DNA from: Auanema rhodensis
Taxonomy: Eukaryota; Animalia; Nematoda
DNA length: 64,000 bases
NCBI GenBank assembly: GCA_964057225.1
Contig: OZ059899.1
Location: 13,888,001 to 13,952,000 of the forward strand
Reading direction: 5' to 3'
In this document: positions 7,814 through 47,000 of the stretch, piece by piece
Layout of the letters: each line of letters starts with the position of its first letter
How positions within the stretch are numbered: position 1 is the first letter of the stretch
The notes under the pieces: model-generated
What the model saw: the letters and a program-made list of their open reading frames with translations, nothing else
Told to the model about the DNA's origin: nothing
Databases searched by the model: none
Position numbers and translations under genes: made by a program

Positions 7814-9637
7814 ATAGAAAGGTATTTACAGAGGGATACAGTAGTAAGAAAGATTTGGATATAAAGAGATAATACAACAGATACCTAAATGTAATCTTGG
7901 TTTAAAAGAAGTTTTTAATTGGATTAAAAGAGGATTATGACATTCAGATCTATACATCTATACGTATATATATCATTATTTCATTTTTACTATATACATA
8001 TATTTGTATATATAAGATTATAATAAATATAAATTTATTTATTTTTTCTTCAATACTATATGAATAAATTAAAAAAAAGAATAAAATTCATTAAATATAA
8101 TATATACATGTATGTAATTATGGAATTATGACATTATCAATAGTTACATGAAAATAAAACACAAAGTATATACAATATATTTAACAATTAATACTATATT
8201 ATACTCATAATTTCTATAATAATATATAATATTAACTATATTAACTATATTAATTATAATAAAAACAGATTAAATATAATTTACCTACTGTTACTAATAG
8301 TATAACTATTATTACTACAACTACTATGCACAACCGTTCATAATAACTATTCAATATTAAAATGAATTATTTTTAAAATTTGCATATAACATAATAGTAC
8401 TTGAAATGTACTTTCACGTACGCATAATTAGCATAAATAGTCTTTAATCATGTTTAGTCATCAATTGAGGCTAAAAATACTGAAATAAAATAATTAATAT
8501 TATTAAAAAAATAAAATAAAGAAAACAAAATAATAAATAAAAATAAATTATTTTATTTAAAAAAATAAAAACAAAAAAACATATAAATATGTATACATAT
8601 GTGTGTCATGTTATGTAACAGTATGTTGTTAAACATACATGTTGTATATGTAAAATAATTTATTTATATTTAACTAGTTTTTTTTTTAAAATTTGAAATT
8701 ATTATTACAAATAAATTATAAAAAAAAAGTGAATGATAAACATAGTACTTTGTACACTTTTTATCAGTTTTTTGTATGAAAAATGATGTCATTTCGATAA
8801 TTAATGTTATTGACAAGGTTTAAAACTATTTAAAACGATATGTATTTTAATAAAATTAAAATTATTTAAGTGATTATATGAGAAATATAATTAAAAAACA
8901 AAACCTTAATGTAATAATACACAACAATTAGCTTAATAGGAAAGAAAGAATATATTTATATAATAAATAATAAGAAAAACTATATGTATATAGATAGATA
9001 GATAGACGAATATCTGTATTAAGTGAATAATCCTTCCTTCTTTTCATTTTTTTTGTTCAAATTTCAATTGGTGATGATGTGCTATTACTTCAGAAAAATT
9101 ACAATTCGTTCTACTCGTTTCTTTCATTTGACGAAAAAGGAATATAAAGATAGAGTTGTAGAATATAAATTAAAGAAGAAAATGAGAATGAAAAATGATT
9201 GAAAAGATTAAAATTCATATAGTTATAGTTAAGAGAATTAGAGAGAAAGATTGAAGAAGAAAAAGTTAAAAGACAGGTTCATTTCTTTCATTACAATGAT
9301 TGTTAAATCATCAACATATTTGGCAATATCAGTCATTTTCTCTTTTACAAACAAAAATTTTGTTCATTTTTCAATCTCTCATATCATCTATACATACTAT
9401 ATGTATATTATTTTATAATAATAATATTTATTATTATTTATATATTGAAATACTTAAATATTTTTATTTAAAATTAGCATATTTAGGCATTTAAAGTTCT
9501 AAATCTAATCAACTTTATTTATAAGCTTGAGTTTTATTTGAAATACTTGTAACTTGATCATATTTTCTATATTTTATTCTTTTTTATATTTAATAATTCA
9601 ATTATGTCATAGTTTATACAATAGTAACTATTATAGG

Positions 9638-44080: not shown

Positions 44081-47000
44081 ATGGCTAAAGGAAAAAAAAA
44101 GGAGAATGCCATTAAACGGAAAAGGGAAGACAGTGAATCAAAAAAGATTGAAATAAGTAAACCAAAAAAGCCATGCAATACGGATTTAGGTAATTTGAGT
44201 GTTCAAGGCCAGGGTAAGCAATTAAATACAAGACCAGTATATCTGTTTCCATTAAGATATTGGGAACGTACTCCCAACTCGACAATCTGTCTTTGAACAA
44301 TTGAAAGTCTCTGTCCAACATAAACATTTCTCCATTGTTGAGGTACAATTTTTGAATATCATCAAGCTGAACTTTATGAATTGTAGGGGCCTATTGGAAG
44401 TGGGAAAACGTTTATAGCAAAATATGTCGGGCGTGAGCTTAATCTACCCCTCAAAGTAATGCAGCTTGGTGATCAGATTGATTCAAAGGTGAATTTTTTA
44501 TATTTGTTTCAACCACTTAATAAATGATTCAGAGTCTTTTCGGTTCATATCAAAGTACTGAGGTAGCTGGACAATTCCGTTATCAATGCTCTAAGTTTAC
44601 ATTAGTGAGTTCTTCGGTGTTACTGTAGTACAATTAAATTTTTAGTGGCTAAAAGAGCCTTGCTTAATTATTCTTGAGGATATTGATATGGCAAACGCCG
44701 ATGTTATATCAAAAGTTGTTGAATTAGCTGCTTCCCGAAAAGCTGTGTTACCTTCAGGGGATGAAGTTCTTTTTGATGATTCTGTTCGAATAATTGCAAC
44801 CTCTAGGTAGATTTATATTTTCAATCAGCCAAATCTTTCCTCTTTTAGCGCTCGAGGAAAGAGAAGCAATGTTTTAGAAGGAGTTCCTAGTCGTGTTCTT
44901 CTGTCTCCTTTGACTGAAAAGGAGCTGAGAAGATTAATAATTGATGTTAGAACAGTTTTCTTTTTTCAAAATGCTTATTGACTGTTATTTTAGACGTACC
45001 CTCGTTGTGCTCATTTAGCTAAAACTTTGGTTTCTGTCTTTTTAGCTGTGCAAACAGTTCCTTTCCATGCTAATTCTAGGATATTAACTTCTGTGTGAGT
45101 TGAAGTTGATATTTTCAATTTTTTAATTTGTCTATTTAGTGATTTGTTACGGGCTTGTGCTCGATTGTCTTCTAATTATGTTGATTTATCTTCAAATATG
45201 GAGATTTTTGTTGAACTTGTTGATTGTTGGTGTTTATCTGATCCTTCGGAGAGATCTCGTTTGTTATGTGAGAAGGTAATTTTCGAAGTTTATGTTTAAG
45301 CTTGATTTTTCTTTTTATAGGTTGCTAGTTGTTTAACTATTACAAGCGACCAATTATCTTTTCATCTCACGGCTAGACAGCCCACTTTTTCTCATGATGA
45401 TTATAAATGTAAAATAGGAAGATCTGTATTACCTAGATTACCTTCATTGAAAATTTCGCAGAGTCATCGGTTAGGCCACACCAGGTAGATATTTTTAATT
45501 TAAATAGTTGGTAATGTAAGTGTTAAAGAGATGTGCTTCAACTAATGGAAAGAATTGCTGTGTGTGTTAGGCAATCTGAGCCAACTTTATTAGTAGGAGA
45601 AACTGGAGTTGGTAAAACTTCTGTTGTACAATCTTTGGCTTCGGCTCTCCATTTAACTCTAAAAGTTGTTAATGTTAGTCCGACTTCTGATTCTGATGAG
45701 TTAATTGAAGGGTATGTTGTTTTTCTTTTTTTTTTAATTGTTGTATCCTTTTTAGTTATAAACCAACTACCGTTGCTCATATATTAGAACCATTTACTAA
45801 GTTTTATCATGATGTCTTCACTTCATGTTTCGATGCCAAAAGAAATGAAAAATTCTTAACTCACTTGGAGGTGACTTATAATTTTTTTTCATTAATGTTT
45901 TTTTCCATTTAAGACATGTTTATCAGCCGGTAGGTATCGAGATTATCTTGTTGTTGTTGAAAATACTGCCCAAAAAGCTTTAATGTCAAAAGATCAAAAT
46001 GTAAGTTATCAAGTTCTACATTCACACTGAAATTATTTGTTTTAGGATCCACGGTGGGCTGAAGTTGTTGTTAGGGCCCGCAGAATACGGCAAGGCTTAG
46101 AGAAGAATGCTGTACCATTTACTGTTATGCGTGGAGCTGTTTTGGAAGCTATTCAAGAAGGAACCTGGCTTTTAATTGACGAAGTATGTTTTATTTTCTT
46201 TTTCTTTCTATTAGTAGCTTTTTATGTAGCTGTGTAATTTATTTAATTTTTTCATTTGTATTGACTTAAAACAACCGAACTAATTAGAATATTTTGAAAA
46301 TTCATTTTTATTTTTATTTTGGAGGAGAACCGGTTGACTCGGCTGCTCAATCAAAATTTTTTTCTCATCTTATTTTTTTTCTTGTAGATTAATTTGGCTT
46401 CTCCTGAGTGTCTTGATGCTATTGTTCATGCTATTTCTGCTAATAGTCATCCTAATTTCCGCTTGTTTGCCTGTATGAATCCCGCTACTGATGCTGGTAA
46501 AAGAAGACTACCTCCCAGTGTTCGAACAAAGTAAGCAACATTTTTCTTATAGTATACGTTTTCTCTTTCTAGATTCACAGAATTTTATGTTGACGAAATG
46601 ACTGATCCAATTCAACTGGGATTAGTTGTTTCATCTTACTTACCTAGTTTGAAGCACAGTGTAGTCGAAACATTGGTTACATTCTATCTAAAATCTAGAG
46701 AAAATTATCCAGGATGCTACAGGTGTGATTTATAATATATTTAAAAAAATATTTATTTTTTTGTAGCTTGAGAACATTATGTCGAGCTTTATTATTTGCT
46801 GCCGATAATCTGTTTGGTAGTGAAGAGAGGTCTCTCTATGAAGCTGTAAGTTTGTATATTATTAAACAAGTTTTTTGATTTTTTTAGGTTTGTATGGCAT
46901 TCCTCACTAATTTAAGTGTTGATGATAAAATTCGAATGAAAACTGCTATCTCTAACACTTTTAAAGTTCAAACGAATGTACCAATTCCTCAACCATCAAA

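Follow-up and report, generated by a model that had tools for sequence, protein, structure and literature searches.

The 64-kb window analysed here, by which we mean the whole stretch C7:13,888,001-13,952,000 of the 180,911,798-base assembly of the nematode Auanema rhodense, carries several copies of a polar DNA module built around the decamer CAACCGYTCA, and the nature of this module is the subject of the present report. The germline assembly of A. rhodense measures 180.9 Mb, of which the soma keeps about 60 Mb, and its annotation comprises 11,943 protein-coding genes (bioRxiv 10.64898/2026.08.27.747507). From left to right, the window contains a collagen-like open reading frame on the plus strand (0.7-1.4 kb), BBS1 on the minus strand (about 2.2-4.1 kb), a plus-strand tyrosinase gene with ShK domains (9.6-13.0 kb) continued by Gly-rich exons to about 13.6 kb, a plus-strand gene for a furin-type proprotein convertase (38523-42034, with Peptidase_S8 and P_proprotein exons and a probable ATG at 38523) and a large plus-strand AAA ATPase gene, taken as midasin, at 44.6-61.1 kb. 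The Gly/Trp-rich exons (GGWGGQGGW-like, 13290-13570, plus strand) follow the ShK domains, with an AATAAA near 13655, and either extend the tyrosinase at its C-terminus or form a small gene of their own. No recognisable coding sequence was found in the window at 4.6-9.5 kb or at 14-38 kb. The strand of genes without Pfam support was assigned with a crude codon-score model.

Base composition is strongly strand-asymmetric from 14000 to 38000, about 24 kb upstream of the convertase, with C>G and T>A on the plus strand and many (CT)n tracts. A mirror-image asymmetry extends over 4000-8000, and the flip between the two falls between 8 and 14 kb. If the flanking modules are read in the direction proposed below, the strand that they would transcribe is, in either stretch, the pyrimidine-rich one.

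The recurrence of CAACCGYTCA had been pointed out in a first-pass annotation of the window and was confirmed: all the motif positions given there are present as quoted, and the window holds five exact copies, one of which (2811, plus strand) had been missed, against 0.12 expected from shuffles. Across the genome the decamer occurs 1,281 times (656+625), compared with 107 times (52+55) for the reversed motif that served as genome-wide control. Its companions are described from a pooled sample of 46 exact sites, five from the window and 41 from contig C1, for which 40 C1 loci were fetched. On the CAACCG strand, ACGT is found 80 times at +40 to +100, against about two per 20-nt bin elsewhere, and in 40 of the 46 an ACGT is present at least once at about +30 to +120; from the overall density (610 ACGT in 264 kb), chance would provide for an estimated 17% or so of sites. 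A third element, AAAAT[G/A]A, is fixed at +27 to +33, its AAA standing at +28 to +30 in 35-37 of 40 sites, and an octamer-like ATGCTAA/TTAGCAT box lies at about +40 to +140 in 10 of the 46. Positions between the elements hold near-zero information. The composite module, called as AACCG with AAA at 28-30 (+/-1) and ACGT within +34 to +114, is present six times in the window against 0.37 in Markov simulations. The strong polarity first ascribed to the sub-motifs is upheld by the one-sided ACGT boxes, and the description of a multi-part, non-transposon cis-element of fixed grammar, including ACGT-core (bHLH/bZIP-type) and octamer-like boxes, is supported as well.

An all-against-all blastn of the 46 sites with 300 nt on either side returned matches between flanks only in simple repeats and, because of this, the module is not a repeat family; it is real and polar. 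The flanks had already been described as non-homologous, and neither they nor the uninformative spacers give a sign of membership in a Helitron or in a family of miniature inverted-repeat transposable elements (MITEs). Long interspersed nuclear elements (LINEs) of flies carry internal promoters made of an initiator (Inr) and a downstream core promoter element (DPE), and the modules could in principle be relics of an old family of MITEs, of short interspersed nuclear elements or of LINE 5' ends, of which an internal promoter and some factor sites have survived. A few identical module copies in local duplications would suit such an origin. The flanks and spacers are nevertheless without homology between copies, the ACGT boxes vary in number and distance, terminal repeats were not seen, and ACGT boxes lying upstream of the predicted start (+1) would not travel with a LINE; of all the explanations considered we find this one the least credible, with hardly any weight left to it.

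Six full modules can be distinguished in the window, a density that is ordinary for the genome. The first (8331-8434, minus strand) has its DPE-like core, CAACCGTTCA on the plus strand, at 8331-8340 and an initiator-like box at 8358-8364, one base beyond the modal spacing; it carries a single ACGT box (TTCACGTA, 8416-8419) together with octamer-like ATTTGCAT (8378-8385) and ATTAGCAT (8427-8434), and its predicted start runs leftwards, away from the tyrosinase gene. The second (13793-13860, minus strand) combines a core at 13793-13802 and an initiator-like AAAATAA at 13820-13826 with ACGT boxes at 13838-13841 (TTCACGTGGA) and 13851-13854 (TTCACGTAAT); this module stands about 150-200 nt beyond the point at which the plus-strand tyrosinase/Gly-rich gene probably ends, and is directed back into that gene, in antisense. 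The remaining four belong to the plus strand. The third (17931-18038) comprises the core 18029-18038 (CAACCGCTCA on the minus strand), an initiator-like box at 18005-18011, an ACGT box at 17958-17961 and ATGCAAAT at 17931-17938, and its predicted start is directed rightwards. The fourth (28460-28538) is a variant, with the core CAACCGCTCT at 28529-28538 on the minus strand, an A-run one base off register (28505-28511), an CCACGTGAA box at 28477-28480 and the octamer-like ATGCTAAT at 28460-28467. The fifth (34195-34257) has the core CAACCGAGTC at 34248-34257 on the minus strand, an initiator-like AAAATGA at 34224-34230 and ACGT boxes at 34205-34208 and 34195-34198. The sixth (37197-37303) consists of the core TAACCGTTGT at 37294-37303 on the minus strand, a T-run variant of the initiator at 37270-37276, three ACGT boxes (37238-37241, 37220-37223 and 37197-37200) and a further ATGCAAAT at 37225-37232.

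The list of sites in the first-pass annotation is thereby retained for 8331 and 13793 on the plus strand and for 18029, 28529, 34248 and 37294 on the minus strand, and not for its other members. Those at 20973, 28265, 31231 and 46272/46331 are bare chance cores without other elements. The copy at 40065-40074, an exact CAACCGCTCA within a convertase intron (listed as minus strand), is doubtful or at best partial: it has an A-run at the right distance and CACGCG, no ACGT box, and TCACGCGTG abutting the core. The additional exact CAACCGTTCA at 2811-2820 (plus strand) is not a module either; it lies antisense in an open frame that continues minus-strand BBS1, where it covers the codons D-E-R-L-D-V, and neither an ACGT box nor an initiator-like box accompanies it. 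The sites 2811 and 13793 share extra letters, and a small RNA gene downstream of the motif was considered and rejected, an Rfam search having returned nothing in the window and 2811 lying in the BBS1-continuing frame. The regular spacing of about 3 kb once proposed for the copies depends on 31231 and 40065 and vanishes without them, and across the genome the spacing is irregular. As to the TAACTAT repeats said to go with the motif, the heptamer is indeed enriched in the window (47 against 15 expected), its units (TAACTAT/ATAGTTA) clustering at 8140-8350 and 17938-18126, beside the modules at 8331 and 18029; restricted to these two copies, it is no general companion and was rejected as a part of the module. 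An ACGT pair, TCACGTCACG, at 38480-38500, about 30 nt upstream of the probable convertase ATG, has no CGGTTG core and stands outside the grammar described here.

When the strand opposite to CAACCG is read, the rigid half of the module becomes T(-2) Y(-1) A(+1) TTT, about 19 free bases, and T(+23) G A R C G(+28) G T T G(+32); the next base, +33, is mostly T (22 of 40 sites). The DPE of flies has the consensus RGWYV(T) at +28 to +32(33) counted from A(+1) and requires strict spacing, and the motif ten element (MTE) has the consensus CSARCSSAAC at +18 to +27 (PMC5580651). GGTTG at +28 to +32 conforms to the DPE consensus. The spacing was examined independently of the 46-site sample by counting patterns over the whole genome on both strands: TCATTT-N20-CGGTTG has 25 matches (4 for the reversed control), TCATTT-N21-CGGTTG 194 (control 9), TCATTT-N22-CGGTTG 1,023 (556+467; control 6) and TCATTT-N23-CGGTTG 275 (control 11). 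The N22 peak places G(+28) exactly 27 bases after A(+1), as strict Inr-to-DPE spacing demands, and the spacers of the 1,023 matches all differ. TATAAA is not enriched at about -30, in keeping with a promoter that lacks a TATA box. CAACCGYTCA therefore appears better read as G(+24)ARCGGTTG(+32), a putative downstream promoter element, than as a site for Myb, Ovo or Grainyhead. The module had been rightly described as polar; its functional polarity is probably the reverse of that first proposed, because the core reads as a downstream promoter element on the opposite strand.

Several dozen of the N21 matches are copies inside tandem repeats. Identical TCATTT-N21-CGGTTG strings recur in long arrays at C1:3377189-3473691 and C3:18513445-18542949 (with a period of about 3.7 kb on C3), and are probably units of germline-restricted satellites that resemble the cassette by chance.

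In the direction of the predicted start, the ACGT boxes are situated about 10-65 nt upstream, on the upstream side only, and a module has between one and five of them (85 in 40 modules). They follow the consensus TT[C/T]ACGT[G/A]AA, that is YACGTG(AA), in either orientation; among the hexamers, TACGTG or its complement CACGTA is represented 32 times, CACGTG 20 times, GACGTG six times and TACGTA five times. This pattern is typical of bHLH-PAS and bHLH-ZIP sites, some variants being PAR-bZIP-like, and the boxes are probably binding sites for bHLH-PAS, bHLH-ZIP or bZIP activators. The octamer-like box (ATGCTAAT/ATTAGCAT), when present, is found further upstream than the ACGT boxes. Distal box, activator boxes, initiator and downstream element then follow one another in an order that, judged from the letters, is that of a compact promoter.

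On these grounds we consider it reasonably probable that the module is a compact, TATA-less start cassette for RNA polymerase II (Pol II), of the Drosophila Inr + DPE type. According to this model, TFIID would contact Inr and DPE together, the ACGT boxes would recruit activators, and transcription would start at A(+1) and run away from the ACGT boxes. Some copies would serve as ordinary gene promoters, as for the NAT9-like and RhoGEF genes on C1 and probably for the convertase, and the many others, which in one orientation or the other occupy introns, the 3' ends of genes or long stretches of non-coding DNA, could act as alternative, antisense or enhancer-type start sites.

The same letters might instead belong to a composite enhancer, a grammar of transcription factor sites without initiation, in which CAACCG(Y)TCA is bound by a Myb-, Grainyhead- or nuclear receptor-like factor next to factors on AAAATGA and ACGT (bHLH/bZIP), the whole acting at a distance and in either orientation. 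AACCGGTT variants among relaxed matches are compatible with this explanation, which we regard as unlikely, if worth serious attention. A 22-nt gap that is sharp to the single base would be unusual for two independent factors, gap and letters both coincide with the Inr-DPE rule, and a fixed order in which the boxes keep to one side is that of a promoter.

Since about one fifth of the sampled modules carry TCATTT at the exact register, the 1,023 matches lead to an estimate of about 5,000 cassettes genome-wide, or about one per 12 kb of retained DNA and about 0.4 per annotated gene. Contig C1 has no exact decamer in its first 5.68 Mb, nor from 10.66 to 13.33 Mb, in what are probably eliminated satellite blocks.

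This distribution also bears on the proposal, made in the first-pass annotation, of a chromosome-architecture element such as an insulator, a condensin or cohesin loading site, an origin or a holocentromere seed. A long multi-finger protein covering both rigid boxes could account for a bipartite motif of about 34 bp that is dispersed genome-wide and indifferent to gene orientation. Against this, known promoter grammar accounts for the motif fully, its rigid half being explained letter for letter; the coupling to activator-type boxes exists on one side only; the 3-kb regularity is not real; and the element is confined to gene-bearing DNA, at the density given above. Nor does it agree with the signal for DNA elimination and telomere addition. 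The Sequence For Elimination (SFE) of A. rhodense and O. tipulae is a 29-nt palindrome found at 28 break sites, with a few extra matches; like the module, it is a lineage-specific motif of this genome, whereas the module is polar, is no palindrome and occurs thousands of times in retained, gene-bearing DNA, and does not correspond to the SFE. The architectural proposal is unsupported, and we hold it to be very improbable. The analogy with the point centromere of yeast, which occurs once per chromosome and has an AT spacer of about 80 bp between the E-box-like CDEI and the CCG-containing CDEIII, fails too: the module has thousands of copies, the distance from box to CCG varies from 35 to 100 nt, and the number of boxes is variable.

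Relations to genes are mixed. At one C1 locus (L028), a TTTCAG acceptor follows the predicted start by about 80 nt, and the ATG of a GNAT/NAT9-like gene lies at +93. At another (L039), an acceptor at about 230 nt and a candidate ATG at about 250 nt past the predicted start were read from the sequence, and the RhoGEF domain that comes after them starts at profile position 2. In the window, the module at 37294 points at the convertase, the probable ATG of which (38523) lies about 1.25 kb downstream; upstream of it, the modules at 18029, 28529 and 34248 have the same orientation and lie in the 24-kb stretch without recognisable genes. To judge by their placement, these three copies (NAT9-like, RhoGEF and, probably, convertase) look like ordinary gene promoters, and three copies at gene 5' ends that point inward are not what a distance-acting enhancer grammar would lead one to expect. 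Elsewhere, intronic copies in sense orientation are found (L022 and L023), and about half of all copies are intronic or antisense.

Several observations weigh against the Inr + DPE start cassette. Its initiator is looser than the fly Inr TCAKTY: T stands at -2 in 28 of 40 sites, C at -1 in 12 (T in 17) and A at +1 in 24 (T in 12), and the best-kept bases are the TTT at +2 to +4 (35-37 of 40); the TCATTT form by itself nevertheless gives the 1,023 correctly spaced pairs. A shift of one base is tolerated, N21 and N23 still exceeding their controls about 20-25 times. The full 10-nt MTE is not present, as only G A R C at +24 to +27 fits, +18 to +22 is uninformative and +23 is T rather than S. Orientation relative to the nearest coding segments is about even (7 sense, 7 antisense), and in three cases (L012, L018 and L037) the cassette fills a short intron in antisense to the host gene. 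No jump in strand composition was found at the module, and a strong splice acceptor downstream is no nearer than at random positions. A simple model of one promoter per gene does not fit this general picture. The roughly even orientation, the many copies in introns or long non-coding stretches and the lack of both composition jump and nearby acceptor would be in keeping with the enhancer grammar discussed above.

The cassettes could also be promoters of dispersed short or non-coding RNAs, such as capped small RNAs like those of PIWI-interacting RNAs (piRNAs), antisense RNAs or enhancer RNAs, with the element at +24 to +32 as a pause or termination signal. Like the piRNA (21U-RNA) genes of nematodes, which may be intronic in some species, they would be thousands of small, autonomous Pol II units, here intronic and intergenic and in both orientations to genes; the T at +3, which is nearly invariant, agrees with the T-rich YRNT sequence at which the 21U-RNA precursors of nematodes start. 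For some nematodes, piRNA loci that lie in introns and have strong pausing signals have been described (PMC6436959). The Ruby core CTGTTTCAY exceeds its reversed control by only about 1.9 times genome-wide (2,775 vs 1,470) and is dispersed on C1, and this count gives no evidence of a large Ruby-motif cluster of the C. elegans style. The module itself nonetheless has no GTTTC (Ruby) motif at about -40 or elsewhere upstream, where ACGT-core boxes are variably placed instead. A 'bad terminator' was made by raising the GC content downstream of a piRNA (PMC6436959), from which we infer that the DNA downstream of a natural piRNA melts at a low temperature; in the module a conserved CGG-containing element sits at that very position, after the would-be small RNA. 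Some copies, moreover, clearly head protein-coding genes. We judge this explanation decidedly improbable. A broader variant, in which the estimated 5,000 cassettes, roughly half of them intronic or antisense, are autonomous Pol II start sites that are not mainly mRNA promoters, are switched on by one family of ACGTG-binding factors and regulate their host genes through RNAs that are short, paused or antisense, appears quite unlikely to us; were it true, it would amount to a nematode regulatory-RNA system on a fly-type Inr-DPE core.

Among known systems, the closest to the putative start cassette is the Inr + DPE core promoter of Drosophila. The two are alike in an initiator-like TYA(+1)TTT, in GGTTG(T) as a form of RGWYV(T), in GARC at +24 to +27 as a fit to the 3' end of the MTE (S A A C), in spacing that is sharp to a single base, in the lack of a TATA box and in activator sites immediately upstream. 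They differ in that the host is a rhabditid nematode, that the initiator is looser and keeps TTT at +2 to +4 better than CA, that one DPE variant (CGGTTG) dominates, that the cassette is tied to stereotyped YACGTGAA boxes and that so large a share of copies is intronic or antisense. The promoter repeats of C. elegans germline genes consist of two motifs in a fixed arrangement and were co-opted from CERP2/CELE2 elements. They too are spread over a nematode genome as promoter modules in which several motifs form a stereotyped set; unlike the cassettes, which show no repeat homology and contain a rigid Inr-DPE pair, they are recognisable copies of repeat families.

The DPE is regarded as a frequent element of core promoters in Drosophila (about 30%) and as a rare one in humans (PMC5580651), and has been reported not to be enriched in C. 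elegans (PMC3730108). If the Inr + DPE start cassette is what we take it to be, such an architecture can be abundant in a nematode, with each cassette wired to the same ACGTG boxes, and start sites would become easily predictable in a trans-splicing animal, in which mapping them is otherwise difficult. What the many copies in introns or in antisense would transcribe is a question that follows.

No description of such cassettes in a nematode was found in the literature. The NAT9 locus of C. auriculariae (20.8 kb, CAJGYM010000007.1, 1624871-1645660, our L043) contains no cassette, which as a single locus is weak evidence of lineage specificity. At about 9690-9760 of this locus, some 200 nt upstream of the NAT9 ATG, three ACGT boxes (GCACGTAT, GCACGTTT and TCACGTTG) occur without an Inr-DPE cassette. 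A protein search with the NAT9-like exon revealed no close relative, the Logan contig it returned being from a distant organism of 26% GC without any AACCG, and a metagenome scan for the full module gave one match, which looks like chance, in a contig of bacterial or phage appearance.

Two arrangements of neighbouring cassettes can finally be reported. At one C1 locus (L005, C1:6502995-6504004, about 500-600), two divergent cassettes share one pair of ACGT boxes in the manner of a bidirectional promoter; a candidate divergent partner was seen in 3 of 40 sites, not clearly above chance. Identical cassettes also lie a few kb apart in local inverted or tandem duplications, at C1:7061102-7061152 (minus strand) and 7064619-7064669 (plus strand), at C1:5918537/5921275/5924051 and at C1:10030900/10036189, and these may be recent segmental duplications that carried the cassette along.

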